Below are positions 31,716-57,574 of a DNA stretch of 64,000 bases, piece by piece. The position numbers and the translations under genes were made by a program. The notes under the pieces are model-generated. The model saw only the letters and a list, made by a program, of their open reading frames with translations. It ran no database searches and was not told the origin of the DNA. The DNA is from Anthoceros angustus (Eukaryota; Plantae; Anthocerotophyta). Numbering within the stretch: the stretch's first letter is position 1; every line of letters begins with the position of its first letter. The stretch spans positions 620,001 to 684,000 of the forward strand of contig MU008153.1 in assembly GCA_010909165.1 (NCBI GenBank), given 5' to 3'.

Positions 31716-32090
31716 AAAAAAAATCAATTGCACAAGGTAGAAGTTCAAAAGGCGAGGTAGGTGAAGGCCAAAGGTCAAGTAGCTAAAAGGCCAAAGGCCA
31801 TATAGGTTAAAGGTCAAGGGCCACGTACATAGTTGAATGAATCTATTACAAATTTTGACTACATATAAGTAGTCTGTAGCGTACCTTGTGAGACAGCCTT
31901 GAGTATTTTGCTAGTGTTGTGTGTAGCCTTGTGTGTTTTGCTAGTGTTGTATGTAGCCTTGAGTGTTTTGTTAACGTCTTTGGGTGTCATCCCATTTTAT
32001 AATGCACTCTATAAGTTTATCTTGATTTAAGAGATATTTCATTTGCAAGCCTCTTATCCTTCATTTCTTTGGTCTGAAGTTGTGACTAAT

Positions 32091-32234
32091 ATGAGTTATC
32101 CAGATGATGTACTTGGATTAACCAAAGCAGAAAAAAGAATATATGAAGGACATATAATTGGGCTTCCAAATGAGGTGAGTACTACATTTCTCTATTGTAT
32201 TCTCTTTTTTATGGCTTTGTTTACCACATTGATG

Positions 32235-32280
<46 letters not shown>

Positions 32281-32518
32281 TATGTAAAATTATGTTTTGC
32301 AGATGGATTATGATATAAGAATAAACATCTTCAAGGCATTACTGGACTTGCCTAATAGTTTAATTCAACCGGGGAAGTCTGCTGAGCTACATAATATTGA
32401 AAATTCAAGTCTCTTTACAGAAGGTCCTTTTGTCTGGAGGGAAGCTTTTGCAATAGAGGAACGAAATAATCCGGGCTCCTCAAGTAACTGCTCTATGAAC
32501 GTCGAAGTCATATTTTAA
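32091..32518 (+). CDS. Novel two-exon family member A (exons 32091-32174, 32303-32518; 99 aa)
   Basis: MSYPDD...GLPNE|MDYDIRINIFKALL...NSSLFTEGPFVWREAFAIEERN. Intron GTGAGT...TTTTGCAG. Homologous to the genes at 37567 and 55756. Confidence 0.65.
32235..32276. repeat. (ATA)n microsatellite inside the family-A intron
   Basis: About 14 ATA units, directly visible. Confidence 0.95.
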
Positions 32519-32529
32519 GTTCTCCAAAA

Positions 32530-32890
32530 TGTGTACCTACACTTGCATATAAAAGAATATATGAAGGGAATGTAACTGGGCCTCCAATAAGGCAAATACT
32601 ATATTTCCCTGCATTTTCTCTCTTTTATGGCTTTACTTACTATATTGACCTGATATAAAGTATATCTATGCATAAATTTGTTATGTAGACTGATTACGAT
32701 AAAAGAATGAACATCTTCAAAGCATTCTTGCACTTGCTTAATTGGTCAATTCTACACGGGAAATGTGCTTAATAAGTCAATTCTACACGGGAAATGTACA
32801 AAGCTGTATAATATTAAAAATTCAAGTCGTTTCAGGAAAAGTTTGTTCTGCACTGCTGAAAGCTTGTACAATAGAGATAAAAAATGATAT
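32530..32890 (+). pseudogene. Degenerate family member B
   Basis: KRIYEGNVTGPP, then an intron ending TTATGTAG, then TDYDKRMNIFKAFLHLLN followed by an internal duplication and a stop. Confidence 0.7.
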
Positions 32891-33439
32891 GGTAGTCAGG
32901 ACAAGTATTATAGGTTTATGAATGGAAAGCTCTCGTTATATTATTTGTATTCTTCGTAATCATGTGAATTCTATAACAATTGATAAATAACACATTTTAT
33001 TAGATTGTATATTCTATTGGTATCTTTTGACATAATCTGAAGTGATATACAAAATTTATAATTAAGATAATGATTGGAAACAAGGTCGTTTAAAATGATT
33101 ATATGTCTTATTTGCCATTTGAACACTTATGTTTTATAACCACATACATATACTATAATGATGAAAAATATCATTCATATCTTGAGTTATGTGAGCGATG
33201 ATTGAAAATTAATGTATATGTACACAAACATTCAAGGAGACGACACCTCTCCATGCAATCTGTATGCCAAAAATTTTGAAGAAAATGTATACGTAATACT
33301 TAATATATGTAAATGATTTGTAGCTACATTTGTGCTTTTGTTTAAAATGAATAATGATAATTATTATATGTTTAAATCTTCTTTAACTACTATATATTTG
33401 AGATCTTCGCTACAATGTGTGGATCTCATCTATCTTGCT

Positions 33440-33750
33440 AATGTGACTAAGTGACTCAAAATACTTGCTCATTGTCCAACTTGTTGCCCAATAGTGTAGT
33501 TTTTATCTAAAAAATGATACACAATACATTTATCTCACATCTGTAACAGCAGCTTCTAAAAATTTACTTAAGCTAACTAGCGATGAGACTGCGATCATTT
33601 TAACCCCTTTCTCCTCCAACAACAACAGCATGAAGTCAAGCTACCATATTTTTTGCAGATCATGTGCCAGATTCTAGTCTACCAGCATATTACAAAATAG
33701 TGTGGATTCTTTCATATTGCAAACTTTCTGAGGACAACTAACTCTTGTCA
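33440..33750. repeat. Diverged copy of the GT2 3' flank (38996-39325); a second copy lies at ~35565-35880
   Basis: Shared blocks CATGTGCCAGA.TC.AGTCTACCA.CA.ATTACA...TGGATTCTTTCA and TTCTGAGGACAACT. Confidence 0.7.
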
Positions 33751-33862
33751 CCAGGAAATTAAATCTCTTTTGTCCTCACTCTTGTCACTAGGGGACTAAG
33801 TCCAGGTACCTCAATTAGACGCTCCAGATTAGGCTCAAGATCTGGACATACTGAGGGTGAGT

Positions 33863-33976
33863 GAGCAGAGGTAACGAAGGGTTTGGCAAAATATAGTAAG
33901 GGCGAGCAGAGGCAACGAAAGGTTTGGCAAGATATGGTAAGGGTGAGGAGAGGCAACGAAGGGGTTTGGCAAGACA
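33863..33976. repeat. 41-bp minisatellite x3
   Basis: GAG.AGAGG.AACGAA.GGTTTGGCAA starts at 33863, 33904 and 33945. Confidence 0.9.
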
Positions 33977-34749
33977 TTGTTCTCCACTAAGCGGATCGCA
34001 ATTTTGTTTACAAACCTAGGGCCTTCTTGTAGATTGAATGCTTTATAATTTTAAGTTTGATTATATTATACACTATCCTTTAACACCTTTCTAGTAGGAG
34101 CCTCTTTTAACTAAGCCCGAAACATTTAGTGTGATTTGGCATAAAAATCATTTGAAAATTGATAGATGCACAAGTTGTAGTAACCTAGAATATTGATGAC
34201 TTAGTACGGGCATATTGTGATATATGGATATTCCTCACTAACATAGAATATAGGCAATTTAGTTCGGATATATCGTGAGAATTGTGATCTATGTTTATCC
34301 CTCACTAAAAATGAAAACCCTACAAGGTAGACGTTATGTAATCAATAGATTCATAGAAGTTACATCAATGTATAGGTTAGTATGTGGTAAAAATACATGT
34401 CTGTTTTTGCATTGGAATATTAGATTAGCAACCATTATTACGAGCAATATTAGTGGTTTATGAATAACCAACCTTTGGTTATATTATTCCTAAATTCTTT
34501 AATGATCATGTTAATTGGGATATAATAAAATATCATGTCATATTATATTATACTAAAAAGAGTAGAGTAGACGTTATTAATAGATGAAATGGGAAATCCC
34601 AATCTACCCATGAAGTTCGAGGAGGAACAACCTAAAAAGGGCTAATAGTAAAAAGGGGAGTCCTAGTCTCCTCGAAGGCCTTCTACTTACTCCACCAATG
34701 ATATCGTGATCAGGGATGATGAAGGACCTACCTACCACCGGTGCTGAAG

Positions 34750-35090
34750 AAGCCGCTAGTCTTGCGCATGTAGCCGTCCTATAAACAACATTAGCCAGCG
34801 CTTTCTGCAGAGTTATGGAAACTGTTGTGAAAGCCTACAGAGGAAAGGGGAGGCCCTCCAATTCTGTGCCTGAGCTTTTGCACACTCCTTAATTAACCTA
34901 GAGAAGTCCTTGCCCAAAGTCTCATGAGTCTCGAGGGCGAGGGGGATGAAAACATGGTCGTCTTGCATAAGAGAGTACTTGTGAGTCTTGCTAGTTGCCG
35001 CCCAGCTCGGGGGGTTGATGATGATGTGGTCGCATATAGAGTCCCTCGTGGGATTCGTGACAACCACATCAGCGATGTAAATTTGCTCCC
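34750..35090 (-). mobile_element. 5'-truncated non-LTR retroelement remnant: C-terminal restriction-like endonuclease (RLE) domain
   Basis: EQIYIADVVVTNPTRD...WAA...K..KYS...HVFIPLALET...LGKDF..LI...Q...V.LQKA resembles the D-(x)-P...K..KY...FxPxxxET pattern of RLE-clade elements. Confidence 0.65.
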
Positions 35091-35984
35091 CTCAGTTTAA
35101 AAAAGGTACTAAATGATCTCATAATTTCAACAAGTATCACACAGAACTTACAAATCTAATAAAAGACCCTATATCATGATTATGAAGCATCATTCACTTC
35201 TCATTTAAAAAATTAATTAATTTATGTATTATAATGATTGCCACTATGTTCCAAGTTGTCCACAGGAGCAAGAGCTAGAACTACAACTAAATGTTTACCA
35301 AATCACAAATCTTCAAGGAGACATGACACTTCCTGTGATCTATACGAAAGAATATGTGAAGAGAATGTATATATAGCATGTGAGTTATGAATTTTTCATT
35401 GAGTTTTATGGGTGTTTATGCTTGCCTAGCATAAACATGTACAAAAAGGGTTGTTATTAAAAATATTTTATAGTTGATAGTATAAATAAATAAGTAAGAT
35501 ATTAAATATATAAAATAATTATCTAAAAATTGACACTCTTATGATCTCGTTATTCTTCTATCCTACTAACAACTCGTGCAAGTTGCATGATAATTCAGAA
35601 GACAGCTAGCGCATTATTAACTTCTCTCATTGGCTTTCATTCAAAGAAAGTACATGTATAGTAATGTGTTTTGCATCTGCAACAACTATAGATAGGAGCT
35701 TCTAAAAGTACACAAGCTAGCTTGCAATGATACTCCAATTACTTTATGTCTTTGTTCTCACGGCAATATTAGGAAGCATTAGGAAGTTGGGCAACCATTT
35801 CTCATCGCACACATCCATCTGCCACACTCCAATCTACTATCACATTAGAGGTAGTCTGAAATCTCTCAATTTCATTGCCTACAATGCACAGTTATGGGGG
35901 CAGCTTCACATCATTATTTCACCGCAACTTTGTGGGAACAAACCACGGTGCACACAATTCCCCTTTCCACAAGCAACTCAAGAC

Positions 35985-36130
35985 ATCAAGCAGGCCTCCC
36001 AAACTCCTTATTTACACATCTGATCGTAATTCCTCTGCATAATATTATAATTATATATATTAATTATAATCAAGTCAATAATGTAAACAAAGCCAATAAA
36101 GAGTTGGGATGCGTCCTAATTTTGGTCGAT
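35985..36130 (-). pseudogene. Remnant of the novel family (intron 3' half plus the first codons) fused to a copy of the GT2 3' flank
   Basis: The minus strand reads CTCTTTATTGGCTTTGTTTACATT...TTATGCAG|AGG AAT TAC GAT, then ATCAGATGTGTAAATAAGGAGT, which matches 39460-39490. Confidence 0.55.
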
Positions 36131-36164
36131 GCCTCCCTTCTTCTGCAAGATAAAGTTACATTCT

Positions 36165-36355
36165 GTCTTCTCATGGAACTCCACCCTTTTTCCCACCAGC
36201 AATTGATATCAATCATGGTGCAGGCAATCCAAGTAATCTGCAGTCTGCCGTCAACACTTACGTAGGGGACCTCGTGCACGTGAACGTGAAGTTCCATCAG
36301 ATTTATTCTCCGTCCGTGATGACAATGATGCTATGGCGAGCGTTTCAAACCCTAA
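36165..36355 (+). pseudogene. Highly diverged GT2 (AGlcS-like) exon-2 fragment
   Basis: Reads FSWNST..PTSN (frameshift) ...VNTYVGDLVHVNVKFHQIYS...MLWRAFQT versus FSWNSTFTFVPTSNID...FNTYLGELRHVKFHLLYS...VLWRGFQT in the intact gene. Confidence 0.75.
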
Positions 36356-36511
36356 ACCCTGTTGGAGGCTAGGAACAACAGGAGTTGCTAAAGAACGAGC
36401 AGGAGCTGCAAGAGCAATACCAGGGGCTACTTGAGGAATGATAGGAGGTGTTGTAGGAATGGCAAGATCTACCGGAGGGACCATAAGAGTTGTTGGAGGA
36501 ATGACAGGAGC

Positions 36512-37567
36512 TTATGGAAGAATGTCTATAGAGCTATTGGAGGAATGACAAGGATGAACAAGAGCTATTTGAGAAGAGATAGAAGTTGCTTGAGTAAGGA
36601 TAGGAGTTGCTTCAGAAACAACAGAAGTTGTTAGAGGAACGATAGGAGTCGCTTGAGGAACGACAGGAGGTGACGGAGGAATGACAGAAGTTGGCTTATG
36701 TTTCGCTCGGTAGAGGACTTTAACTTGAGGAATGATAGGAGGTGATGGAGGAAGAGTAGGAGCTATTTGAGGAACGACTGAAGTTGGCTTGGGCCTTCCT
36801 TGGTTGAGAACATAAATTTCAGAAACGACAGGAGCTGCTTGAGCGATGACTGAAGTTGCTTGAGGCATGTCTAAAGGTGCTTGAGGAACAACTGAAGTTA
36901 CTTGAGAAACGATAGGAGGTGCTGGAGGAATGACATAAGCTAGTTGAGGAACGACAAAAGTTTCTTGAGAAATGATTGGAGTTGCTTGAGGAATGACACT
37001 ATCAGGAGGAGTTGCTAGAGTAACAATAGGAGCCATTGGAGGATTGTCAAGAACTGCTTGAGGAATGACAAGAGTTGCTTCAGGAACAACAGGAGCTGCC
37101 CGAGGAACTACATGGGTTCCTTGAAATATGACAGGAGCTACTTGAAAAACGTAGTTGTTTTCGTCAAAATATGTCAATGATGTTGGCAGAGGAGTTGCTT
37201 GGTCGTCTTTTAGAGGAGCTGCGAAATTTCGTTCCTCTATTGGAGAATATTCATTCCATACAAGAGGACCATCTTGGAAAAGACTTGAATTTTGAGTATC
37301 ATGTAGTTTGGCCAATATGGGAGCTTGTGGAATTGATGTTTTGGGCACGCCCAAGAAAGCTCTGAAATCGCTCATTCTTTTATCATAATCTATCTGTATA
37401 ACACAATCATACATATATTTACTTGCAATTTTGTCAACATTGTAAACAAAGCCGCTAAAGAGAGAAATTATGAGAAATATAATACTCACCTCATCTGGGG
37501 GCAAAATTACATTCCCTTCACATATTTCTTGCAATTTCCATGCGAACATATCTTTTGAAGAACCCAT
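36512..37567 (-). CDS. Novel two-exon family member C with a Pro/Val/Gln repeat tail (exons 37567-37490, 37393-36512; ~319 aa spliced)
   Basis: MGSSKD...ILPPDE|IDYDKRMSDFRAFL...NSSLFQDGPLVWNEYSPIEERN, followed by heptad-like VIPQAxP repeats. The 96-nt GTGAGT...TATACAG intron is stop-free and in frame. Confidence 0.7.
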   Translation of the reverse strand: MGSSKDMFAWKLQEICEGNVILPPDEVSIIFLIISLFSGFVYNVDKIASKYMYDCVIQIDYDKRMSDFRAFLGVPKTSIPQAPILAKLHDTQNSSLFQDGPLVWNEYSPIEERNFAAPLKDDQATPLPTSLTYFDENNYVFQVAPVIFQGTHVVPRAAPVVPEATLVIPQAVLDNPPMAPIVTLATPPDSVIPQATPIISQETFVVPQLAYVIPPAPPIVSQVTSVVPQAPLDMPQATSVIAQAAPVVSEIYVLNQGRPKPTSVVPQIAPTLPPSPPIIPQVKVLYRAKHKPTSVIPPSPPVVPQATPIVPLTTSVVSEATPILTQATSISSQIALVHPCHSSNSSIDILP

Positions 37568-37599
37568 ATGTAGTTTGACTTACTTCACCGGCAGTTGAA

Positions 37600-37760
37600 T
37601 CAATACAGCAGGCAAGTCCTGGGATCCTTTGAGCATATCGTATTTCGTCTGCATAACACAATTATACATATGATTAAGTCATTATAGTGAGTGAAACTGG
37701 CAAAGAGAGAAACTATGGGAAAATGTAGTACTCACCTTGTTTGGAGGTCACCTTAGTTCT
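37600..37760 (-). pseudogene. Truncated family member D immediately upstream of member C
   Basis: CCAAACAAG|GTGAGTACTACATTT...TGTTATGCAG|ACG AAA TAC GAT...GAC TTG CCT...ATT CAA, homologous to member A. Confidence 0.65.
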
Positions 37761-38344
37761 TTAGACATTAGTTCTTTAAACCACCTAAGACCAAGAAACA
37801 AATGAACCCAAGCTTGCAAATGACTCATCTCCTATTTAAAAAAAACTTACAAGTTGTACTAATATATAGGGCGGATCGGTCATAACACCCAAAGACACTT
37901 ACAAAGCAATTAAGGCTGTGTCACTCAAAGCTCTCACACAATGTCGTCCAGTGGTATGTATATAGATTGACTTATAACTCAAATTTTTGAAATATTCCTT
38001 CCTTTAACCTACATGGCCTTTGGCCTTTTAGCTCCTTGACCTTAGGCCTTTCAGCTACTTGGCCCCTTGGACTTCTCCTCGTGCAATTGATGTGTGGTCA
38101 GAATCCTTATGGGCTTGTGACGGAAAATTTTGTGCTCGTGCAAGTGTGAGGAGAAGTGATGAAGCTCAAGCCAGCTGATGTCCAGTGTAAATTCACAGTT
38201 GAAGACTGGTCCCCAAAATATCAACCAGTACTTGATCCTCACATCTAGCTCCACAGTTTCAGCCCCCGCATGCCCGCAGACAGCGTGCCGATTTCTGAAG
38301 CTTCGATACGTACCTCTGCCATCCCCAGATTCTTTCTGAAGTGA

Positions 38345-38925
38345 GGATGCTCTCGTCAACTAGGGTTTCGAGTCTGTCTACCTCAACGAGAAGCTCCAGA
38401 TCGGGCTCACCCCGCAGACATTCGAGGGCTACATCAAGCAGAGTCAGCGATGGGGTTCCGGAGCCATCCAGTTGTTTGCAGGAACGTGGAAGTCCATGCT
38501 GGGATGGGGATGGAACAACGACCTCAACCTGGTGCTGAAGCTGCTCCTCGTTCTTGCAGACTGGCAGTGGGTACTACTATGTCTCCATCGTCAACATGAC
38601 TCTCATGGGAGTGCTGTTGAGCACCCTATAATATGGCGGCTGCAATGGATCTTGGTTGTTCCTACCAGCAATATCGATCATGCTGCAGGCGGCCAGAGCA
38701 ACCAGTCAGTTTCAACACGTATTCAGGGGAAGTCAGGCATGTGACGTTCCATCTGATTTATTCTGCAGTAGTGTTGACAATGGTGCTATGGCGGGGGTTT
38801 CAGACCTTCTGCAACTACGGCCTTCTGGACTGGAGAGGGAGCTTGTTCCTGATCGGCCTGTCCATGTTCCTGCTCTGCTCTGTGCCGCACATGATGTGTC
38901 CTGCCATGTACATCCTGTCTCCATG
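38345..38925 (+). pseudogene. Inverted partial duplicate of GT2 exon 2 (corresponds to ~40640-39875) with two internal deletions and frameshifts
   Basis: High nucleotide identity, e.g. GTCTGTCTACCTCAACGAGAAGCTCCAGATCGGGCTCACCCC. It includes the region encoding QRQRW (mutated here). Confidence 0.93.
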
Positions 38926-39662
38926 AAATTATGTTCACTATAATCAACGCAACATTTGAAAATCAACAATTTTTGGGTATCATTGATCGATGTGGGTTAG
39001 TAACACTTCGCGCAAGTTGTGCATGACAACTCAGAAAATCTTGCGCATTATCAACTTGTCATCCGACAGTGTGGCTTTTATTCAAAGAATGGTATACAGT
39101 ACATTTGTGTTGCATCCGCAACTATAGACAGCAGCCTCTGGAAGTACTCAAGCTAGCTCGCAATAATTTTAACCTCTTTGTGCTCCCGGCAACAACAGGA
39201 AGTCGAGCCACCATTTCCCATCTAGCAAATCCATGTGCCAGACTCCAGTCTACCACCACATTACAGGGTAGTCTGGATTCTTTCAATTCCACTGCCCAGA
39301 CTGCAAAGTTCTGAGGACAACTTCACATCATAAGTTCACCACTTCTCCGTCGAGACAGCAACGTCCTGTGGGCGAAGATGGGGAAGCTTGATACCTTGAG
39401 TTGCATGTGGAAAGGAGTGCTGTGCGCACCGTGGTGTGTTCCCGTCGAGCAAGGTCCTCCTACACTCCTTATTTGCACAACTGATGATGAGACTGTAAGT
39501 TGGTAGGAGGGCAACTACTGACCTGTCGTCAAAGTCATCTGGTCCTGTTCCTGACTGCAGAGCCTTCAGAATCGATAGTTTCGGGCTGGAGAAACAACAT
39601 ATTAGCTAGCATCACACTATCTGGATGCTTAGGCCTGGATGAGCCATGCATGGCCTGTTTCC

Positions 39663-42005
39663 TCAGAACGATCCACCTTCACAGAACTCCACATCCAAGC
39701 CAGTGTTAATGACATATAGCACCCCAGTCCAGAAAACTAGGACGAAGACGGACATCCCCTCATAAATGTAGACCGTCCAATGCCATGTGGGCATGCCGTC
39801 TCCCTGGTTGAAACGGGGCACCCCATCAGCATCATACCGCAACAATGACCGTCGCTGCGTAGGCTTGTAATTTCGAGGAGACAGGATGTACATGACAGGA
39901 CACAACATGTGAAGCACAGTGCTGAGCAGGAACATGGACAGGCCAATCAGGAAGAAGCTTTCCCTGCAGTCCAGAAGGCCGTAGTTGCTGAAGGTCTGAA
40001 ACCCCCGCCATAACACCACTGTCACCACAACAGCAGAGTAAAGAAGGTGGAACTTCACATGCCTGAGTTCCCCTAAATACGTGTTGAAGACAGACTGGTT
40101 GCTCTGGCCGCCTGCAGCACGGTCGATATTGCTGGTAGGAACAAAAGTGAAGGTGGAGTTCCAGGAGAAGATGGATTGCAACACCATCCTGAAGAAGAAG
40201 GGAGTCATCCACCAGAAATGGGACTCATCCCGGTTCCTGCTCAGAATGGACTGCGGCACCGGCAACCAGAGCGAGATCCATTGCAGCCGCCATACCACAA
40301 GAGTCACAGCAAGGTATGAAATCAAGCGCCGGTTGTCATCAGCATCGCCCACTGTGAGGTTGAGGTGGAAAGCTAGGGTGCTCAAGAGCACTCCCATGAG
40401 AGTCATGTTCACGATGGAGACAAAATAGTACCCAGTCTGCCAGACAAAGAGCAGCTTCATCACCAGGTTGAGGTTGCTGTTCCATCCCAGCATGGTCTTC
40501 CACGTTGCTACAAACTGCTGGATGGCTCCCAAACCCCATCGCTGCCTCTGCTTGATGTAGCCCTCGAATGTCCAGGGGGTGAGCCCGATCTGGAGCTTCT
40601 CGTTGAGGTAGACAGACTTGAAACCTTGGTTGAACAGAGCGAATGCAGTCATGGTATCCTCCGTAATGGACTGAGGCTGGAATCCCCCAATCACATTCAG
40701 ATGCTTCCTCCGGAACACAGCCCCCGTGCCTATGCAGTTTGCGGTTCCCAAACTGTCCCTGTGCACCAGAACTCTCTCGTACCCCATCATGCACGAGTCG
40801 TTGAGAGGATCCCCTGGAGGCAAGTTGTAGAAGGATTGCGGCACCTGGACAAAGGAGACCTGCGGAGAGTCGATGATGTGAGGCATGAGCCGGCGCAGAA
40901 AGGTCGGGTGCAGAATCATGTCGGCGTCCATCATCACCACGTACTCCGCATTGGAATGCTCCAGCCCGAAGTTGAGATTCCCGCACTTGAAGTTGTGCGG
41001 TACTCCTGGTACCTGCAACATTCAATTGAACCAGTCTGAGAATACATTGATTCCATCACAGCACACGGCAATCAACATCACTTTCGCTTCTTTCCTTCTG
41101 CGTAGATCTCTAACGGCAGCTGGGCAGCAGCAATTCCTCCACCCCATCAACAACTGTCATCCTTTGTTTGCGAATCCGGCAGGACAGCTCAAACTTTTGC
41201 AGGACAACTCAAACTTTTGCAGGACCCTGACAGTGCTTCATGAAGCCTTCAAGCACCTATCATTCTCAGCAAAAGACAAAGATCCTGGAGATGGGCAGTC
41301 GAGATTCAAGCATTCACTATCGCCCACAAAAGCCAGAATTCATGGAGCAGGACGAACAGTGTATACCTTCTTCCTTCGGAGATACGCAACCTGGCCTCCG
41401 GTCTCCACTTGCAAGGCCTCACAGAAAGCTCTGAGCTCGTCATCAACGCCGTCGTCAAGCACAAGCACTTTGAGGCGGTCCTTGGGATAATGCATGGCCA
41501 GGGCGGCTCGGATGCTCTCCTTGGGGACATCCGTGGGCTCGTTACAGCAAGGCAGCAGAACGTGCACGGTCGGGTAGCTCTTCCCCTTCAACGAGAGCTC
41601 GGGGCGAAAGCTCGGGGGAAGGAGATGATCCACAGCCGCGCACACCAGGGTGGTGAAGTAAACAAACTCGCAGCAGACTAACAGCAGGAGCCAAGGCGCC
41701 TTCACGGCCTGATCCCACTCTCTGGAATACAATCCCACCTTGAACGCCAGGTAGTTGGAGTTGGCAGCAATCTGGGCCACCATGAGGAAGCTGGTGAAAA
41801 TGTACATCACAACCTTCCGCTGGTACGTGTTCCGATCCGCGCCTGCCTTCCAGTTCGGCAACGACCCATTGCCGAGCTTGGATCCGTCCTTGTCCGTCCC
41901 CGCGGAATACAGCAAGAACTCGGAGTCTTGGTCTTCCTCCTCTTCCTCCCATTTGGTGTCCTTCTCCCCTGGGCCGTGCCTCAGGGCCAGCTGCGCCAAC
42001 CGCAT
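39663..42005 (-). CDS. Processive GT2 glycan synthase, AGlcS/fungal Tft1/BcsA-like; 2 exons (42005-41367, 41012-39663), 662 aa
   Basis: Motifs PCCNEP, VLDDG, FKCGNLN, MDAD (DxD), QVPQSFYN, GTGAVFRR, ITED and QRQRW (QxxRW), with multiple TM helices. It lacks the plant CESA zinc finger, P-CR and CSR. Intron 41366-41013. Confidence 0.88.
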
Positions 42006-42366
42006 CTTGCTCGTCTCTCTCAATCCCAATAAATCACGCTGCAATGCGCAGCAGATAGCAAGCTGCAAATGCGCAGCAGATACAGATACAGAAGGTCTCG
42101 CTCGCACTCAGCAGTCTACCACACCGAGCCTCCAAACTAGCCGGATCGTATTCACAACCACGGATCCAGATTTGTGATCAAGAAGCAGGGTCTTCTCAAG
42201 TTCTCACACACCGATCCTCGGATCCACAGCCCACAAAAATGAATTCGATTCCCTACCGCCTCATCTCTACAGCAGATCCCGGATCAATAACACCGAACGA
42301 AGCCGCAATGCTGTGCATTCAGAGCTTGGTGCGGATGCATCAATGCAATGCACTCACGAGATGGAC

Positions 42367-42450
42367 TCTACCTTTCAGGCTATCACCTAGCGCAACAGCC
42401 AAACTTGCTACTTTCAGGCTATCACCTAGCGCAACAGCCAAACTTGCTAC
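42367..42450. repeat. 42-bp direct repeat x2, followed by (GATA)n and (TCTTCC)n tracts upstream of the GT2 gene
   Basis: CTTTCAGGCTATCACCTAGCGCAACAGCCAAACTTGCTAC occurs twice. Confidence 0.9.
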
Positions 42451-45057: not shown

Positions 45058-47265
45058 CTAGAGGGCTTTGAGTGTTTTCTTGTACTCCTGAAATGTACCG
45101 TGGAATGCTGTTGCTTTACCTTCAGAGATTACCCAGAGTTCATCCACACTGCCAGAGATAAGATGCTCATCGTGACTGATCATCAGCACCCCTCCCTGAA
45201 AGAGATTGAGCCCCGCAATGAGCGCCTCCACGGCATCCAAGTCCAAGTGATTGGACGGCTCGTCGAGAAGAAGGATGTGTGGCTTGTTGAAGGTGATTTT
45301 GGCGAAGGCAACACGACTTTTCTGGCCACCAGAGAGGGTGTACATGGGCTGGAGGGCCAGGTTACCTGAGATACCGAATGAGCCCAAGTGGGAACGAAGC
45401 TTTTGCTCCACAGATCCGGGGAAGCAACTTGCCATGTAGAGCAAAGGGGTGGAAGACAGGTCGAGTCCGTCCACGTGATGCTGGCTGAAGACCGCCATTC
45501 TCACCTTGGCCGACCTGAAAACAGTACCTGAAATTGGCTCCAGCTCGCCGGAGATGAGCTTCAACAGAGTGGACTTCCCAATGCCGTTAGGACCGACCAT
45601 GGCCAGACGGCTGTCCAGGTCCAAACCGAAGTTGAGGTCCTTGAAGAGAACAGGACCGCCTGGATATGCGAAAGAGGCATCACTGAAGCTGATGATAGGA
45701 GCACTAGGCTTGTCATCTGGTGTCGGGAACTCGAACTTGTAGTCCGGATCATTCACCACAGCGTCCACATGCCCGATCCTCTCCAGCGCCTTAATCCTGG
45801 ACTGAACCAGGGCTGCCCGCTTAGCATTGTACCGGAACTTGTCCACGAACGCCTGAATGTGAGCCCGGGTGCGCTCATTGGCTTCGTGCGCCTTCTGCTG
45901 ATTCCGCAGACGCTCATCCCTGGTGCGCTCAAATGTGTCATAGTCCCCCTTGTACGTCACCAGCTTCTGCTGATGAAGATGCAGAATATCCGTCACCACA
46001 GAATTCAGAAACTCTCTCGCATGAGACACCACAATCAGAGTCTTTGGCCACTTCACCAAATAAGTCTCCAGCCACAACACGGCGTGCAAGTCCAGGTGAT
46101 TGGTCGGCTCATCGAGAAGAAGCAAATCCGGCTCCACAAACAAAGCCCGGGCCAGAGCCACCCGCATCCTCCACCCTCCGGAGAATGTCCTGGTCGACCT
46201 AGCCTGCATCCCCGCATCAAAACTCAAACCGGCAAGAATGGATGCCGCACGCGCCTCCGCCGAGTAAGCATCGATAAGCTCCAACCTCTTGTAGATCTGC
46301 TCCAATCTGGCCGACACAGCGTCCTTCTCCTTCTCTTCCTCCTTTCCCTCCTCCCCGTTGGCCAGATCCGCCGCCTTCTGCCGCGGCTCCGCCCCGCTCC
46401 CAGTCTCCCTCTGCTGCGCTACCAGCCTAGCCTCCTCCTCCAGCAGCTGCGTCCTCTCGATATCCGAGCTCAACACGCACTGCAACACCGTTGTGTCATC
46501 TCCTACCACCTCCTGCTCCACATGCAAGATCTGGCAGTTCTTCGGGATCCCGTCGATCGCATGCTGCGCCATATGCTTCAAGAAGGTGGTCTTCCCGGTC
46601 CCGTTCCTCCCGACTAGGCCATACCGCCGGCCGTATGCCAGCGTCACGGTGCCCTCGTTGATTAGCTCCTTCCCTCCCATGGAGATGGTAAAATTCTCCA
46701 ACCTAATGTCCTTCGGCACGCTTCCCTCCCCGACTCCGCCATGATTCACCAGCACCGCCGGCATCCCTACCACCGCCGCCTCCGCCGCTGCCAGATGCGC
46801 CTGGTAATCTGCCTGCCGCTGCCGCTCCTCCTTCCGCCTCCTCCTTTCAAGCTTCAGCCGCTCCCGCTCCGACACCTGCGGCGTCCCGGCCCCCTGCTCC
46901 GGCCTGCCTGCCAATCCGCTCTCCCGCATCCCGTCCGACATCCGCACAGGCGCAGCCAGGCTGCGGTAACCTCCCCTGGCGGCGCCATTCCTGCCTGCGA
47001 ATTTCTGCGACCATGTCGCACAGACTTCCCTCGCCTCTGCATCATCCTGCACGCACTCTGCAGCCACCAGCAGCGGCCCCAGCGCTTCCAGCGCCAATTC
47101 TCCTTCCCATCCGAAGTCGAACGCCTCGTCCTGAAGCACCCGGATGATGTAGTCGATGATGATCTCGTCCACCTGCTCCGCTTTCTTCCCCAGCACCTCG
47201 TACACGCCTTTCTCCACCATCTCGTCCCGCAGCGGAGCTGCCGAACTCGGCATTGGAACCGGCAT
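45058..47265 (-). CDS. ABCF3: ABC-F subfamily ATPase ABCF3/GCN20, intronless
   Basis: N-terminal VYEVLG...VDEIIIDYII.VLQDE.FDFG; two ABC cassettes (GRNGTGKTT, FSGGWRMR, LLLDEPTNHLD; GPNGIGKST, LSGGQKSR, LLLDEPSNHLD); no TM segments. First ATG at 47265. Confidence 0.95.
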   Translation of the reverse strand: MPVPMPSSAAPLRDEMVEKGVYEVLGKKAEQVDEIIIDYIIRVLQDEAFDFGWEGELALEALGPLLVAAECVQDDAEAREVCATWSQKFAGRNGAARGGYRSLAAPVRMSDGMRESGLAGRPEQGAGTPQVSERERLKLERRRRKEERQRQADYQAHLAAAEAAVVGMPAVLVNHGGVGEGSVPKDIRLENFTISMGGKELINEGTVTLAYGRRYGLVGRNGTGKTTFLKHMAQHAIDGIPKNCQILHVEQEVVGDDTTVLQCVLSSDIERTQLLEEEARLVAQQRETGSGAEPRQKAADLANGEEGKEEEKEKDAVSARLEQIYKRLELIDAYSAEARAASILAGLSFDAGMQARSTRTFSGGWRMRVALARALFVEPDLLLLDEPTNHLDLHAVLWLETYLVKWPKTLIVVSHAREFLNSVVTDILHLHQQKLVTYKGDYDTFERTRDERLRNQQKAHEANERTRAHIQAFVDKFRYNAKRAALVQSRIKALERIGHVDAVVNDPDYKFEFPTPDDKPSAPIISFSDASFAYPGGPVLFKDLNFGLDLDSRLAMVGPNGIGKSTLLKLISGELEPISGTVFRSAKVRMAVFSQHHVDGLDLSSTPLLYMASCFPGSVEQKLRSHLGSFGISGNLALQPMYTLSGGQKSRVAFAKITFNKPHILLLDEPSNHLDLDAVEALIAGLNLFQGGVLMISHDEHLISGSVDELWVISEGKATAFHGTFQEYKKTLKAL

Positions 47266-47469
47266 GGCTGCTCCCCTCAGTGATCCGATCGCTCGAATGC
47301 AGCCTTCTGTCACGCACACACAGCGCGCCTTCACGCTCCAACAATCTTCCCTAGGGCTGGAACGTCAGGTGACCGGCTACAGCGAAGATGACCGGCCGTA
47401 CAATATGTGGCCGGTTACTGGTTAAAGAATGTTATTTACATACATCTGTAGGTTTGCGGGTAACATTTT

Positions 47470-49451
47470 TTATGACAATCTGTACATGTCTGTTGGTCGA
47501 ACAAGAGAGCGAGTTTCAGGGTGCGTTGGAATCTGGGAAGTCCCAAGCCAAGCGAACAACGCCCTGCCCCTGTACAAGAACTGGGCAGCACAGACGGATT
47601 TTCAAGTAAGGGAACAGTTGTCTTGCTTGTGCAGGAGAGGCTTTCAGTCAGTGGAAGGAGAGCTAGTTTAAAAACTCACAGCATGATCCTTGTCGATGTT
47701 CTGGTGTCTCTGGATCACAGCCACCACGTCAACAGTGATAGTGCCATTCTGCCAACAGGAGTACAGATGAGTAAGGTTGCACAGAACTGGTAAGCAGTAT
47801 GAGATGACGTGATGTGAGGGAAGACATACCGGGCAAAGCAATGGTTCTAGGCTAATGCAGCACGTGGGAGTGGAGGATGGAGAATCGGTTCTGTCTGGAG
47901 GAGTGTCGAGGATGTGGTCGGCATCGGCACATTCGATGACATGGAGACTTTCTCCACCTACAAGGGCTCCAAGAACGGCTTTCCTCACCTGCCGCATGAG
48001 ATGGTTGGAAAATGGCTTCAGCACCCTCTGCTGGAAGGAAAATGGCTTCAGCACCCTTTCTGAGCCTTCTTTTGGTCTTGAATGGTGCTTACCTGGAAAG
48101 GCATGGCTGATACGTAGGCTTCTTCTATGCAGAAGTTCTGAGAGAGTGTGTGCTGGACCTGAACTTCCTCAGCCATCATCTGCAGCGAGGTGAAGAAGAG
48201 TGAGCTTCAGTTTTCCCGGTTGGATGTTGCAGCAAATATTGCACATGGGTACAGTAGAGAGAAGCACACTACCTCGTCGGGATCAGAGTTGGCAAAGTCC
48301 TGGTGCTCGCGGTGGCTCTTCTCAGCCAGCCCAGCAATAGCTTCCATCTGCAGTCAAGTATTTGAGACCCTGGATGAGGCTCGATAGGATGGATCACCAT
48401 GAAGGAGCTCATATTTGACATGCTGGACAGAGAAACAACATGAATCTTGTGGCGGAAGTGAACAGACTTACGAGATAACCGAACAGCAGGCCAGTGTTGT
48501 GATTTGAGCATGCAATGGCCATGATGTCTCTGCATAATCAAAATAACCTTAGAATTTCTGAGGTCGTAAAGCAGCCAAACAAGAACTTGGTAGTGAGAGG
48601 CCCTTCAACTCTGACATGCCTGAGGACTTTGGGATCTGAAGAACGTCGCCATAGTAGCTGGTCGACGGCCTTGGATGTTAAGGACTGCACATTGCCGAAC
48701 ATACATGACCATTAGGCTAATCGGCACATGGGCAAGCACGAGAACGAGCAGTAGCTACTAGCAAACATGAAGACAGCACCATCAGCTGTCCTTTCCTTTA
48801 CCAGAAGAAATGCTTGTTGCTCCAAAGTGAGACGCGGATTTATGAAGACCTGAGAGTGGAATCAGATAAAAAGCATTCTCGTGAATCATGTGCTCATGGA
48901 TGAAGCAAGAAACAGCTTATGCTGCAACCAATTGCGTATGTTGCAAGGACAACAGCTAGGTGAAAGCTCCCCGTACCATGAAATTCCAGAGTCTGCACAT
49001 CACCCAGTGTCCAGAGGTCGCGATATGCACACAATCAGCTGAACTGTTAGGACAACTGTAGTTCCACAGGGTTCCCAAACAATCTCCGACTCCCAGAATG
49101 TGAAAGCAGCAGAGACTAACCTCCGCACGACAAATCGCACACTCCATTGCTTGAACACGCCAGAGACCCTGACGATCTGAGAATACCCAGAACAGGACGA
49201 TGTCAGATGCGTGCAGTCTTTCACTCATTGATGGTATGGAACACGGAAGGAACCCACAAAGGAAGACATACCTCGTCATACACGGTGAACAAGGCAAATT
49301 CTACGACACCAAGCACTGGTTCTGCAAACAGGTTGCCTGTTAGCCGAATACATGAGCAATCCTCTCGCAATTCAGCCCGATCCTCAGAGTCTGGATGGCT
49401 TTCCGAGAGCGAATTATTGCGGGATCGGAAGATCAAGAAGTCTGGGGCCAT
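47470..49451 (-). CDS. Unknown 328-aa protein, 11 exons, with a C-terminal degenerate U-box/NleG-like segment
   Basis: Manually spliced exons 49451-49272, 49176-49121, 49055-48977, 48849-48802, 48684-48620, 48529-48472, 48347-48273, 48179-48093, 47988-47830, 47748-47680 and 47580-47470. All phases are consistent, with nine GT-AG introns and one GC-AG intron of 65-127 nt and no internal stop. Confidence 0.75.
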
Positions 49452-50098
49452 TTCTGGCCCCCGACAATGCTAAGACAGCCTTTATTCACAAATGCAGGTC
49501 AGTTGCTGTCATTGGCTGTAATGCTGCATTTGCTGTTATTGGTTGTAACAGAATGCCAGGCTCTTGGACTTCTCTAAATTTAGGAGACGTCCAATGCTCT
49601 GATTGGAGGCTTTCTAAAGACACGACACCGATCACTCATAATCCAGCCTATCAAGCTGCGTAATATAATGGTGGGTTGTAGCCTTTGCAGTGTGGCCAAT
49701 GGCGTTCGAAGATGTGCAGGAATATCTCTGGACAATATAGCTATGGACGTGTATCACTGGAAAGCCTAGCCATGCCAGTCTATCTCTGGAAGGCATAGCC
49801 ACGAAAGTCTCTGGAACATGGCAACGGAGGTCTATCTCTGGAAAACATAGCTATGCACTGGCCTGGGCTTCCCTGATTCGCAATCACATATGAATGAACG
49901 TTGACTACTTGGTTCAATCACACAACTACGGAAAACATAGCTGTGGAAGACCCAATGAACTACTTATTTCAATCACACCTATGGAAGATATCCACCCGTA
50001 TGAATCTTCTCTTTCTGTTTGTACTGGAGCAAGGAACTGCGCAGGCAACTGTCTGGAAGAAACATTTTCTGTTCTGAGGATCTGAAAGCATTTCTCTG

Positions 50099-52027
50099 CT
50101 ACTCGGCTTCACTCCACCCTTCGTCATCACCACCAAACATCGCTGCCATCTGCATTGCAAGCCTTGCTGCTGTGTCCCGCCTGTGGGAATCTGACATGTT
50201 GCGCATGTTCTCTCGTAGGGACAGCATTTCCTGCATCAATTTCTCCACGTCATCTATCCCAAGCTCCCTGTCGTCTGGTGGAGATCGGCTCACAGAGCCT
50301 TGTGTCGCATGGTCGTTCCCATTTTCTTGTGCATTTACACCTATGGTGTCAGGTATTGGCACACCAGGTTGGACCTCTGAAGTAAGGTCCATAGATCTGG
50401 TACTCCCAGCTTCCTCCACCACAGAACTGGAGGCAGATGTTGTGGGGGCACTTAACTCTGAGTGTCGTTCCTCATCGGAGCCGTCGCCTCTCTCATTGAC
50501 TGCATCTGGCCCAGCATTCGCTGCTTCGCCACTTGCATCGAAGACTGGCACCTCGACCGTTGAGTCCCTGTCTGATTGTTTCCACTGATGCTCGTTCACG
50601 TCCCACACTTCCTCTGCAGAAGCATTAGAGAGAAGTTCATATTCAATGGAGATTTCTGACTCGTCATCACTGAAGGCTTCTGCTGCGGGTCGAATGAAAC
50701 CAATCAAAGATTTGTTAGCATAGGACCAAGGTAGGACCAAACCTCCTCCAGTCCACATACAAGAAGCTAAAGGTGTTGAGAGAAAACACTGACCGTCATT
50801 CTCCACGCTGGGTGGTGCGTCACTGAGTTTTGCAAGAGGCTTCATCACCATCCCAGGCCACATGTGTGCAGATAGTGCGTCTCCAACACGAGAAATCCCC
50901 TGAGAGTCCCCCTCCACTGACAGACCTGTTGTCAAGGCAATCACATCATCCAAGCTCAACAGAGGCTGGTGGAGAAGTCAAGCACTGATACGTTACAGAA
51001 AAGCTAGTGATCAACATACACTTATCAAAATCTTCGTTGATGGCACAGGTTTCGATATACTCGATGCCCCTCTCACTGCACCACTCAATGCAAGCCCGTC
51101 TTCTCTCATCAGATGTTGTGTCCTCTTCCTCAGCCAGCAAACTGCTGCCCTCTGTTCGCTCAAGCCCATACTCCAGAAACTCCGGATGCGGATCACTGGA
51201 CGATTCACCCCTTTTCAAAAGCCACCTCCTGTATTCCACATGCCCAAAATGTTCTGGAACACGGTCAGCCTTATTTCCCACACACAAGATAATCTGGACG
51301 CTTTCCAGCTGTGCTCCATCAGCCCAAGCTCGGATGGCATCAAACGACGATGACTGCACACAAACGTCGTTCTCACATCAACCCAAATGGATCAATCCCA
51401 CCACCATCCTTGTTGCCCAGCTTGCAGAATTCAAAACAACCACAAACCCAACAGAAATTCTCCTCATCCCCAGAGAACTTACATCGCTCAGGTCAAAAAC
51501 CATGACTACCGCCTCACAATTTCCCGCCATGGAATGCATCCTACTGCCATCATCCACCTGCTTGTCCTCAATCGGGCCCACCCAGATGCTCACATCGGCT
51601 GTGTAGTACTTAGTGTCAATCCTCCACCTGCAGCAAAAACCTACAAATCATCATCTGCACCCAACTCCAAATCCACCCAACCCACACCCGAACATCATCA
51701 TCCAACACCCAATACCTTCAAAACACCTCTGATGCTCCATACGGGCACCTACCCATGGCAACTGACCCCGGAAGATGGTGCCCCACCAGACGCTCCTTTC
51801 GTCAATTCTACGAACACCAAAGCACAATATGCATCTCATGTCCCAGCAGCAACCAAGCTCAAAAACCAGATGAAGCATTGCAACAAGGGCAAGTGCAAAC
51901 ACTTACTATTCAGAATGGACCGCTTGCCAACATCCCGTGGTCCAAGCAGCAGTATGCTAGGCCTGGCAGACAGAGCACGTGCATCAGCACCGTGCTCCTC
52001 TACTGCCACCGGTACTTCCATGCCCAT
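50099..52027 (-). CDS. AAGAB: Alpha/gamma-adaptin-binding protein p34, multi-exon
   Basis: RPSILLLGPRDVGKRSIL, IDTKYYTADV, VMVFDLSD, LCVGNKAD, WCSERGIEYIE, ALSAHMWPGMVMK and RRDTAARLAMQMAAMFG. Confidence 0.9.
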
Positions 52028-52304
52028 CCTCCACGACCCGCACGCTTACGCTTCGTCTCAGACCAGATTTCGACACTTTGGCTACTCAGATGCAACCTCC
52101 TCCCTTGCCTGTTGTGAACAGCCTGAGTAAGAATCTCTCGTCGTCTCCGAAGTGTTGTTTTGGTATTTCTCTGTCTACAGCAGAGAACTGTAAGATAAAA
52201 AAACTCGGCATCCATACAGTATATACCTGTCACAGGTTGCAGGTCTGACCTGCTGGAGGGAGCAACATCCGCTCCATCTGCCTCTGCCTCAATTTTGTCG
52301 CAAG

Positions 52305-54573
52305 ATGATGAATCCAGGGCAATGGCTTCTGGTCTCCTATGTGGCAATCTTGCCGCTGATCGTAGTGGTGCTTCTGTGTGGGGAGAAGCGGGTGTTTGAG
52401 GGCACGTTTGTGCAGCGTGCCCACTATTGGATAACCAGCGGATCCTGCGATTGCTTCCAGTAAGTTGGGTCTGGACTCACATCACTCTTAATTGTGAGGG
52501 TGGGCTGCTTCTTGAAACTGGATTTGATAATGTGATGTATGCGCAGGACGCTGGTCGGACTCGTTTTCGGTGAGAGGGGTACGCGGGCATGTGCTTCTAT
52601 GGAGCACGCCTGCTGTGAACGGCCAAATCCTGTATTGCAGGCATGTACCAACAATTGGGTTCTGTTGATCGTATGTTGTTGGTATGTTTGGGTGTATAGT
52701 TTTCTGAGGGCAACATGTTGATTTTTGCAGCTCTTTTATCTGTCCTTAATTCTTGGGATCTATTATACGTTCATCATTACATGCTTCAAGTTCATTCCTG
52801 GATACTATGTCCCAGCTCTGCACAAGTAGGCTTCCTGGAATCCTCCTTGTGTATAGCTAGCGTGTGTATCGAGTTAGCTTCATTTCTGTGAGCCTTTGGA
52901 ATCATGTTGTTGGTTCTTCAATCCTTTGAGAGCAGTATGAGAAGTGTGTTTGTTTGTTCAGATATACAGGAACTGCGGCAGTGCTTTTTGGGTTGGTGAT
53001 CTTCCTGGTGACTAGTTTCTCTGATCCAGGCACCATAACAGCGGCAACCTTGGCCCAGCACGAGGCGACGTATGCATATGACAATATCATATACGAGCTG
53101 AAGAACTGCACAACCTGCAAAGTCGCTCGGTCTGTTTTGATTCCTGGTGGTTTTCCTGGTGGAAGGGTCTCATGGTGTGTGGAAGGCTCATGTTTCGTAT
53201 GAAGAAGTTTGTTTAATGTCTGTTAATACTGACTCCTGGGGTTGTTTGCCTCTGCAGTCCTGCTCGATCCAAGCACTGCAGCATTTGTGATCGTTGTGTT
53301 GCCCGCTTTGACCATCATTGTGGTTGGATGGTCAGTGCTGCGAACCTCCAACTGCTGGCAATGCCTCTGCAGCCTTGAAAGGTTACTGTTGTGACCTTTG
53401 TGTTTGGTCTGACTGCCTGTAGCTGTCAAGCCCCTTCTGTTTGTTGCTGAGCTTTTGTGGATGTTGTGCAGAATAACTGCATAGGGGAGAACAACCTTCG
53501 TTACTTCTTAGCTTTTCTTGTGTGGTGAGTGTTTGGTGCAGTGTATTTGATGCTTTACTGTGTCCACGGCCCGACATGATGTTAAGGTTGCAACATGCGT
53601 GACGGTTGTTCTGAGCAGGCATTCCCTGCTGTGCTGGTACGGGGTGTTTGTCTTGATAGCCATTTTGGCTGGAGAGGTACGAGACAGAAGGGTTGTGCAC
53701 ACACTCAAGTGTATGTACTTACCTCTGTCAGAGTTGGTTCACATATTGTGCTTTTTTTCCCCTTGATGCTCTTCAAGTTCATCCAGTACAAATAGATCTT
53801 GATTGCTGTGTCTGAGTCCAGTCACTTCTTAATCTGCTGTTTGTTGGGGCAGATTACTTTGGGCCAAAAATTCCTCTGCAGGACGTAGTTATCCATGTTA
53901 CTCAGGTATTAAGAGGCACTGAATCCTCACGACGTCTTTTGTTCGTTACTACACCTGCTTGTAAGTATCATGAGAGGATGCAATGCCATGTGATGAGATA
54001 TAGCTTATTTGTGTGCCGCGTTGTCTGTGCTTTGTTTGCAGTGGCTCATGGCATACTACTGGACGCAGTTACTGTTAATGCTCTTCCTTGTAGTTATATC
54101 ATTCTTGCTCATGGGTTTTCTGGGCTACCATCTGTACCTGGTGGCAACCAACACTACTACAAATGAGGTGTGTGCTAATTGCGCTCGTGCAGTGTTTTGT
54201 TGGGCATTTTGCTTCCTGAGTACAAAATGCATGCCAAGTTCTAGCACCGAGCGGGGTGTATCACTTGAAACTGCACAGCATCCCAGCTATGTAGGCCACT
54301 AACTTCCCAGTGAATGTGGTGTATCAGTCCTTCAAGTGGGACACCTATCTAAGGTACCATGAGCAGCTCGCAGCACAAAGACAAGCTGCGGAAGGCAGTC
54401 AGTCCAAAAGCAAAGCATCCAGTGTCGCACAGTGGTTGTGCTTCTGGCATGGAGGAAGGGGGCAAATCCCAGTGAAGAAGAAGAACATCTACAACAGGGG
54501 TCTTCGAAGCAATTTCATGGAGATTTTGTGGCCTCGCAGCACTCAATCAACAGCATCTCGTAAACAGAAATAG
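52305..54573 (+). CDS. DHHC protein S-acyltransferase (PAT17/Swf1-like), multi-exon
   Basis: [43 protein letters not shown]|[24 protein letters not shown]|[15 protein letters not shown] and NIYNRG. Confidence 0.92.
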
Positions 54574-55280
54574 GAGTGGCCAGTGGGTTATGCACAAAGC
54601 TTTCATTCTTAGGAGGCGTGATCTGCCTATATCACAAGTTGAGGAGGACGAAAGGGGAGAGAGCATCGGCGGCAGCTATATTACTTCCATAATTGTTGTT
54701 TTTTAGATGGGTCCCGTCTCGAACTCAGAGATCATGGGTTGGCATCGCCCTGCCGATCTGTTTGCTGTGCACTCATCATCTCCCTGAACTGATTCTGAGT
54801 GGCATGTCCTCCATTTGCAAACTCGCTGCCAGGAGCTCTTTGGGCCAATACCAAATGGCACAAATGCAACCTAAGGGTGGACTCCTCTGCAGACACGGGT
54901 TTCACATTACAGTTAGAGCTGTCACCATAATCTTGTCTCTGAGGCAACTGCCTCAGAGCAAGTTGCTTTGTGTCATACCTGCCATCTCGAGACGGTAAGC
55001 TTGTATCTGTCTGGGTACAACTTGGAATTCAGATGGATGGCTTTGAAATTTGCAAGCAATTGTTCATAGCCTTTGGGAATCCGATGTCCTGGCCAGTTCT
55101 GGCTGCCAGAATGGTTGGGTACTCCCGGGAACGGCATGCCGGGATTAAGAAAATCATGGTACTGTCAGAAACTGTAGGATTGAGAAAGTCGTACGGGTTT
55201 CCAGAACTGCTTTCCATTTGCATTTGCTCGGATCCTCCAGTCTCACAAATTGTACCATCGCATATTCATGGCAGTGACCA

Positions 55281-55465
55281 AAATACAGAACTAGATCGAT
55301 GAGATCAGTTTACTTTAATCTACTGAAAAAGCTTGCAACTCTCAAAATACAGAACTAGATCAGTTTACTTTAATCTACTGAAAAAGCTTGCAACTCTCAA
55401 AATACAGAACTAGATCGATGACATCAGTTTATTTTGATGTACTGAAAAAGCTTGCAACTCTCAAT
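55281..55465. repeat. ~55-64-bp tandem repeat x3
   Basis: AAAATACAGAACTAGATC...TACTGAAAAAGCTTGCAACTCTC occurs three times. Confidence 0.9.
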
Positions 55466-55755
55466 AAGTGTGGCCACTCTCTCTGGCCATTTCCTTCATA
55501 TAACACTCATCATTTAGTTACTTGTGATGTCTTAAACCTTCCACACCCTAGAATATGGACTTTGATTTAAGCTTCTGTAAGCCGTGTTCTATATATATAT
55601 ACATATATAATATAAATTTATTTACGATAAGATTGTATTCTCATTATTAACCTTGGGTTTCGACATCTTATAACTCGATCTAACTCTACATGCTCTATAT
55701 ATGAAAACCTCCTGTAAATCATAAATCATGTCTGAGTTTAAAGTTGTCTACCAAC

Positions 55756-56288
55756 ATGAGTTCCAAAGGTGACGAGCCCTCTTCATCTTCGCATGATTAT
55801 TACACGGATTTGTACGAAAAAATATTTCAAGAGAATGTTAGACTTGCGAATGAGGTGAGTGCTACATAGTTTCTCTCTTTTGCAACTTTGTTTGCTACAT
55901 TTACTTACAATATATAACTATGTATAATAATGTTATGCAGGTTGATTATGATACAAGAATGCACCGTCTCAAAGCATTTCTAGAGTTTTCTTCTAGTACA
56001 AAAGTTTCAATGCCTCAAAGGTCCCTCGAACCACATGATGTTAAATCGAACAGTCTCTTTCAAGATGGTCCTTTTATTTGGAACGAAGCTCCGGGAATTG
56101 AAGAACAAAATGTTCAAGCACCTCCGGTAGAAGAAGAGAAGTGCAATCTTCCAGCTTCGTTGGAAGAAGAGCAGAATTGTCTTCCGATTCCAGAGGTGAC
56201 ATCGGTGTCATCCAAGAAGAACGAAGCTATTCCTGTTCGTCAAGTCATCCACCAAGTGGGTTTCAAGATTGTCCCAAAATTGGCTTAA
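55756..56288 (+). CDS. Novel two-exon family member E (exons 55756-55854, 55941-56288; 148 aa)
   Basis: MSSKGDEP...YEKIFQENVRLANE|VDYDTRMHRLKAFL...SNSLFQDGPFIWNEAPGIEEQN. The intron GTGAGT...TGTTATGCAG sits at the same position as in members A and C. Confidence 0.7.
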
Positions 56289-56886: not shown

Positions 56887-56888
56887 AC

Positions 56889-57542: not shown

Positions 57543-57574
<32 letters not shown>

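Follow-up and report, generated by a model that had tools for sequence, protein, structure and literature searches.

We analysed a 64-kb stretch of the genome of the hornwort Anthoceros angustus (contig MU008153.1, positions 620,001 to 684,000), hereafter called the window, for a two-exon gene family that had been proposed there in an earlier reading of the sequence alone. A DNA profile of 343 nt, built from four full-length copies, was run over the whole window. It found exactly seven copies: three readable ones (m1, m2 and m3) and four remnants (r1, r2, r3 and r4). The sequence-only reading had placed three intact members at 32091 (+), 37567 (-) and 55756 (+), and all three were found at these positions both in the sequence and in the lists of open reading frames (ORFs). 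The remnants it had placed at 32530 (+), ~37700 (-) and ~36100 (-) were recovered by the DNA profile as r1, r2 and r3, and the fourth remnant, r4 at 35325 (+), is an addition to its list. The seven copies are confined to two spots separated by 18 kb, and their coordinates are as follows.

32091–32518, plus strand: readable copy m1, with exon 1 at 32091–32174 (28 codons), intron at 32175–32302 (128 nt) and exon 2 at 32303–32518 (71 codons and stop)
37567–36512, minus strand: readable copy m2, with exon 1 at 37567–37490 (26 codons), intron at 37489–37394 (96 nt) and exon 2 at 37393–36512 (293 codons and stop)
36251–36511, minus strand: continuation of the m2 tail repeat in the frame of m2, past the stop at 36512–36514
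55756–56288, plus strand: readable copy m3, with exon 1 at 55756–55854 (33 codons), intron at 55855–55940 (86 nt) and exon 2 at 55941–56288 (115 codons and stop)
32518–32887, plus strand: remnant r1, a full-length decayed copy in direct tandem after m1 (DNA profile)
37776–37568, minus strand: remnant r2, directly upstream of m2 (DNA profile, E 8.5e-28)
36163–36023, minus strand: remnant r3, the 3′ half of the intron (GGCTTTGTTTAC...ATGCAG) and a few exon-2 codons (NYDQM), then a stop (DNA profile, E 1.2e-8)
35325–35420, plus strand: remnant r4 (profile match 35325–35369), an exon-1-like piece (DLYERICEENV), then GTGAGT and the start of the intron (E 2e-5; DNA profile, E 9e-4)

Each readable copy begins with an ATG. 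The first exons comprise 28, 26 and 33 codons in m1, m2 and m3, which agrees with the 26–33 residues read earlier, and they end in LPNE, PPDE and LANE, respectively, as the proposed ending (P/A)(N/D)E requires. The common phase-0 intron was likewise found in all three, starting with GTGAGT and ending with CAG; the donor context is GAG/GTGAGT in every case and the acceptor is CAG. The m1 intron holds an (ATA)14 microsatellite. The 96 nt of the m2 intron are in frame and free of stops, and the m3 intron contains stops in the frame of exon 1. Because the m1 intron measures 128 nt and the m3 intron carries stops, only by splicing can the two conserved frames of m1 and of m3 be joined. Retention of the intron in m1 (32175–32302) and m2 (37394–37489) would encode hydrophobic stretches that resemble membrane spans (VSTTFLYCILFFMALFTT... 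and VSIIFLIISLFSGFVYN...). Since m3 and r2 carry stops at this place, the stretch is probably a by-product of a U-rich intron.

A conserved tract within the intron had also been reported. The pattern TTCTCTCTTT..GGCTTTGTTTAC does occur in six of the seven copies, r4 having a loose version only; what did not hold is a special degree of conservation, which is not significant. The tract is rich in U and finishes in ...TTTAC, in line with the yUnAy branch-point pattern. Presumably, a branch point at this position would suit a short plant intron.

Exon 2 of all three members contains the motif by which the family had been recognized, DYDxR...SLFx[DE]GPxVWxE...IEExN. It lies in a core of 56 residues common to m1, m2 and m3, with a pairwise identity of 44–50% and 18–19 invariant positions (DYD.R, A..L, H, SLF, GP, W.E and IEE.N; by residue D2, Y3, D4, R6, A12, L14, H, S, L, F, G, P, W, E, I, E, E and N). 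The conserved unit as a whole consists of the last ~15 residues of exon 1 ([YL]x[KRE]I[YCF][EQ][GE][NH][VI]...[ND]E) and 56–74 residues of exon 2. Exon 2 opens with an amphipathic helix (DYDxRMxxFKAFL), which is followed by two invariant short motifs, SLFxDGPxVWxE and IEExN. When exon 2 of m3 was submitted to AlphaFold with the three-sequence alignment, a confident helix was predicted only at exon-2 residues 3–16 (YDTRMHRLKAFLEF; predicted local distance difference test score, pLDDT, ~90), with coil elsewhere. The model as a whole had a mean pLDDT of 57.5 and a predicted template modelling score (pTM) of 0.18, which is too poor for a fold search.

The C-termini had been thought to differ completely. 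This proved too strong, as m2 and m3 share about 18 further residues past the core (N..AP........LP.SL). Beyond that, the tail of m2 is encoded by an array of 21-nt repeats, each translated into 7 residues of the VVPQATP type, and the m3 tail is acidic. Each exon product is acidic overall, with a net charge of -2 to -6, and by reading of the sequences the products appear to lack a hydrophobic N-terminal stretch such as a signal peptide or membrane span would need. The GC content at third codon positions (GC3) of the family is 0.21–0.37, compared with 0.72 in the nearby ABCF3, GT2 and trihelix genes; the nearby Got1-like and adaptin-binding ORFs have values of 0.32 and 0.48. The low GC3 is compatible with weak expression or with genes that arose in AT-rich intergenic DNA, and proves neither.

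Several observations bear on whether these frames code for protein. The copies differ in exon length by multiples of three, and in intron length by 10, 32 and 42 nt. We simulated neutral drift over the 80 shared codons from a consensus ancestor, applying the observed number and spectrum of changes in 20,000 runs. All three copies remained free of stops in a fraction of 0.0007 (0.07%) of the simulations. The mean ratio of the nonsynonymous to the synonymous proportion of differences (pN/pS), pooled over exon 1 and the core, was 0.67, compared with 0.92 ± 0.16 in those neutral simulations that stayed stop-free, where the fraction at or below the observed value was 0.032. Among the copies, the Nei-Gojobori ratio of nonsynonymous to synonymous rates (dN/dS) in the core was 0.39–0.63, and the synonymous divergence (dS) between members was ~0.7–1.0. 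The decayed copy r1 is 70% identical to m1, compared with 63–66% among the intact copies, and carries at least five disabling lesions.

These figures can be set against the view that the family is a non-coding repeat of ~440 bp, either a tandem-repeat unit or a regulatory or RNA element, in which the open frames are accidental. Such a repeat would account for the arrangement of m1 and r1, which follow each other head to tail without a spacer in a unit of ~440 bp, and for a DNA identity that is near uniform across the putative exons and intron. However, the simulation makes stop-free frames in this AT-rich DNA very improbable by chance (0.0007), the exon indels are in frame, pN is smaller than pS, and only the readable copies and r2 still show a perfect splice consensus. 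Nothing was returned when the window was scanned against Rfam and for tRNAs, and no Rfam family matches the unit. We regard a non-coding repeat as very improbable. Several lines favor coding, none of them overwhelming, and the family is most likely protein-coding and more than repeated DNA. As judged from the sequences, the constraint on it is weak but real, amounting to weak purifying selection, and over most of their history selection has preserved the readable frames of the copies.

We then compared the lesions of the individual copies. Remnant r1 has lost its ATG, its 5′ splice site GT is changed to GC, and it shows a 1-nt deletion, a 1-nt insertion and stop codons, as well as a 31-nt internal tandem duplication (32735–32797). 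In r2, exon 1 is shrunk to ..PPNK with an in-frame TGA and exon 2 is cut after about 22 codons, with the GTGAGT...CAG intron still intact; upstream of r2 lies a sequence resembling the 5′ leader of m1 (TCATTTGCAAGC...). The ATG of r4 is in another frame. The conserved unit is intact in m1, m2 and m3, with damage to the tails of the first two and no visible lesion in m3. The m1 tail is frameshifted with respect to m2 and m3 by an 11-nt gap relative to m2 just past the core, and it ends 15 residues after the core. The tail frame of m2 contains one stop in 307 codons, compared with 13 and 17 in the other two forward frames. Because both the repeat array and the open frame run about 70 codons beyond the stop at 36512–36514, this stop is probably premature and lies inside the array.

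This record of damage raises the possibility that we are looking at the relics of a dead family, once coding, of which all copies in the window are now pseudogenes or on the way to becoming so, their open frames surviving only because decay is recent. Four copies out of seven are plainly dead, a frameshift affects the tail of m1, and in m2 a stop interrupts the repeat array of the tail, with an open frame beyond it; an intron conserved as much as the exons and an AT-rich composition unlike that of most neighboring genes would also be in keeping with it. It is harder to reconcile with m3, which has no lesion, and with the absence of damage to exon 1, to the two splice sites and to the core in m1, m2 and m3 despite a dS of ~0.7–1.0. 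The tail lesions spare the conserved unit, and retention of all three ORFs under neutrality was rare in the simulation (0.0007). We consider a dead family unlikely, yet the foremost of the competing explanations.

To place the family, its products were compared with known proteins. The sequence-only reading had recognized no known domain, and no Pfam or other match was found here. The three exon-2 products matched no Pfam family at E ≤ 10, and the 351-residue read-through ORF of m2 matched none at E ≤ 1; a word-based homologue search with m3 exon 2 gave no candidate. An exhaustive profile search with the core against 1.84 billion (1.84e9) protein representatives resulted in 28 matches with E down to 4e-9. 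We rejected them as relatives. They are six-frame-translated CRISPR arrays in which 'LFQSTPSVWRET' recurs 4–8 times and sums to the score, and they cover only profile positions ~33–51, the SLFxDGPxVWxE part. The core thus found neither a Pfam family nor a relative among the transposable element (TE) proteins of these representatives. The ESM Atlas, searched twice, yielded no usable match, the best hit of a PDB sequence profile search had E ~1, and metagenome and viral contigs gave pattern matches of which none was confirmed. The members themselves score 109–118 bits against the profile, and the search would have picked up a relative no more divergent than the paralogues are among themselves. 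The protein libraries contain no close kin of this plant, so that the searches exclude relatives outside the lineage only. The neighboring ABCF3 gene has a best library identity of 84% (a Logan contig) and reaches 79% in mosses and liverworts, and the neighboring adaptin-binding gene reaches only 32–35%. Because a dS of ~0.7–1.0 between paralogues makes the family old enough, sister species should carry it.

The surroundings of the copies suggest how they arose. Like m1 and r1 on the plus strand, r2 and m2 are arranged head to tail on the minus strand, and the two loci share blocks upstream.

31185–31823, plus strand: block upstream of m1, an inverted match to the block upstream of r2/m2 (38001–38247)
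38001–38247, minus strand: block upstream of r2/m2, with 72–87% identity to the block upstream of m1

The shared blocks align in inverted orientation, 31185–31813 with 38247–38001, and a 23-nt minisatellite at 31764–31823 matches 38001–38064. In addition, a 305-bp unit is present in two tandem copies (91% identity) at 31120–31729 upstream of m1, part of which recurs inverted at 38100–38247. Because the upstream blocks are homologous, the m1 and r2/m2 loci are an inverted segmental duplication that includes the 5′ flank. The zone is prone to such events, as fragments of a GT2/cellulose-synthase-like gene (ORF 39663–41021, -) are duplicated in it, and for this reason local segmental duplication suffices to explain the copies. 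What we propose is limited to tandem and inverted local duplication; the order of events appears to be beyond the reach of global identities. A history consisting of an A-B tandem pair, an inverted duplication and reciprocal loss was suggested by local blastn identities and was discarded, as the global pairwise identities do not separate A and B types.

Other duplicated sequences were seen in the same zone. Beside the GT2 gene, 38349–38931 (+) is an inverted partial copy of its part at 39868–40640 (-), with 86–89% identity and an internal deletion. An older GT2 fragment lies at 36106–36351 and is abutted by r3. Three direct copies of a stretch of about 300 bp, with 70–72% identity, are located at 33458–33714, 35564–35923 and 38998–39340, interleaved with family remnants and GT2 fragments.

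The family had been said to sit only in TE-rich zones. This was confirmed for m3 alone, which is near a copia long terminal repeat (LTR); the ORFs around m1 and m2 yielded no transposon domain. The distance of 340 bp between one copy and the copia LTR was accurate, with m3 at 336 bp.

56624–56886 and 61784–62043: copia LTR pair, the two LTRs being 96.6% identical
60545–61066: copia RVT_2 domain

The copia element beside m3, with LTRs of this identity, is a separate, younger insertion. Just inside its 5′ LTR we observed a degenerate, (GCGCGG)n-like tract that is very rich in GC and about 700 bp long (57055–57757), and ORFs are open in six frames across 56884–57859 around this tract. Elsewhere in the window, four long ORFs of 680, 445, 629 and 461 residues lie in 19018–26804 (-) and 27562–28947 (+), and none of them matches Pfam at E ≤ 0.001.

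The position of m3 also bears on whether the two-exon unit might be a passenger or accessory gene spread by an unrecognized mobile element, such as a Helitron, a Pack-type or another non-autonomous element. Apart from the 336 bp that separate m3 from the copia LTR, one could point to the AT-rich, repeat-bearing DNA in which the copies lie and to family remnants that abut fragments of the unrelated GT2 gene, as in gene-capturing elements. A search for shared flanks and terminal inverted repeats found no inverted repeats flanking any member, though, and no flank common to all three. The homology of m3 to m1 and m2 reaches from about 55 bp before the start codon to about 50 bp past the core and is thus confined to the gene, and the flank that m1 and m2 have in common is explained by one inverted segmental duplication. 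The ORFs adjacent to m1 and m2 have no transposon Pfam domain (transposase, reverse transcriptase or helicase), the 1.84e9 representatives hold no relative among TE proteins, and the seven copies are confined to their two spots and not dispersed. A mobile element is in our view quite unlikely as the carrier. A retro-copied (processed) pseudogene would have lost its intron, and intron sequence is kept in six of the seven copies. Of the two alternatives offered by the sequence-only reading, a fast-evolving, lineage-specific family with birth and death is retained here, and an accessory gene of an unrecognized mobile element is set aside.

Taken together, the copies probably belong to a lineage-restricted ('orphan') family whose two-exon nuclear genes encode small, acidic and largely disordered proteins, a family that selection has kept readable and that undergoes local birth and death. 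As in an orphan family, no homologue was found outside the lineage and the ORF is maintained by selection. The cluster has grown by tandem and inverted local duplication and is now decaying copy by copy, a birth-and-death pattern. The product would be a small, soluble and mostly disordered protein, whose amphipathic helix and two invariant linear motifs might dock onto a conserved cellular partner, with no constraint on the variation of the tails, be they short, acidic or made of a translated 21-nt minisatellite. The AT-rich composition would be in keeping with genes of low expression that arose from AT-rich intergenic DNA or have long resided there. The family thus appears to be a real but ordinary orphan with a predicted coding model. 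A bolder version is that the family is confined to hornworts, was born from AT-rich intergenic DNA and has been kept for tens of millions of years, with a new docking motif (SLFxDGPxVWxE and IEExN) beside the amphipathic helix and with its gene in a ~440-bp tandem unit that continually spawns and loses copies. We think this version doubtful.

Some points weigh against the orphan-family interpretation. The fraction of invariant columns is 0.51 at codon positions 1 and 2 compared with 0.44 at position 3, which is not a significant difference. In the intron it is 0.47–0.53, so that the intron is conserved as much as the exons, and here again the differences are not significant. Two of the three readable copies have tail lesions (the m1 frameshift and the probable premature stop of m2), and the local cluster may be dying. 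Finally, the mechanism of docking motifs is purely inferential, drawn from a model of low confidence (mean pLDDT 57.5) built on three sequences.

If expressed, the genes would represent an undescribed protein family of an early-diverging land-plant lineage. The conserved unit is compact and well defined and could be tested directly for partners and phenotype, and hornworts are transformable. The locus also provides a small, clean example of birth-and-death evolution, with tandem and inverted duplication and the loss of different copies at each locus.

Small intrinsically disordered plant proteins that act via short linear motifs form a general class. The predicted proteins resemble it in having one short helix, invariant aromatic and acidic motifs in predicted coil and variable low-complexity tails. 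In contrast to its named families, with which there is no sequence match, they share the type of architecture only. Gene fragments carried by Pack-MULEs and Helitrons are similar in that multiple partial copies lie beside unrelated host-gene fragments in repeat-rich DNA. Unlike those, the copies described here have no terminal repeats or shared ends, are local and not dispersed, and when complete keep the start codon, splice sites and open frame.

The taxonomically restricted families of bryophytes, which are orphan and possibly de novo, are a further point of comparison. A survey of bryophytes reports very large numbers of 'unique' families and puts forward 36,481 candidates for de novo genes (PMC12513842, Nat Genet 2025). 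Because such families are so numerous, our finding leaves the general picture unchanged. The family shares with them (PMC12513842) the absence of a recognizable domain and of homologues outside the lineage, as well as short products, few exons, atypical composition and rapid turnover. It differs from them in that its paralogues are old (dS ~0.7–1.0) and a defined unit of 56–74 residues has been kept, which argues that it is not a very young proto-gene.

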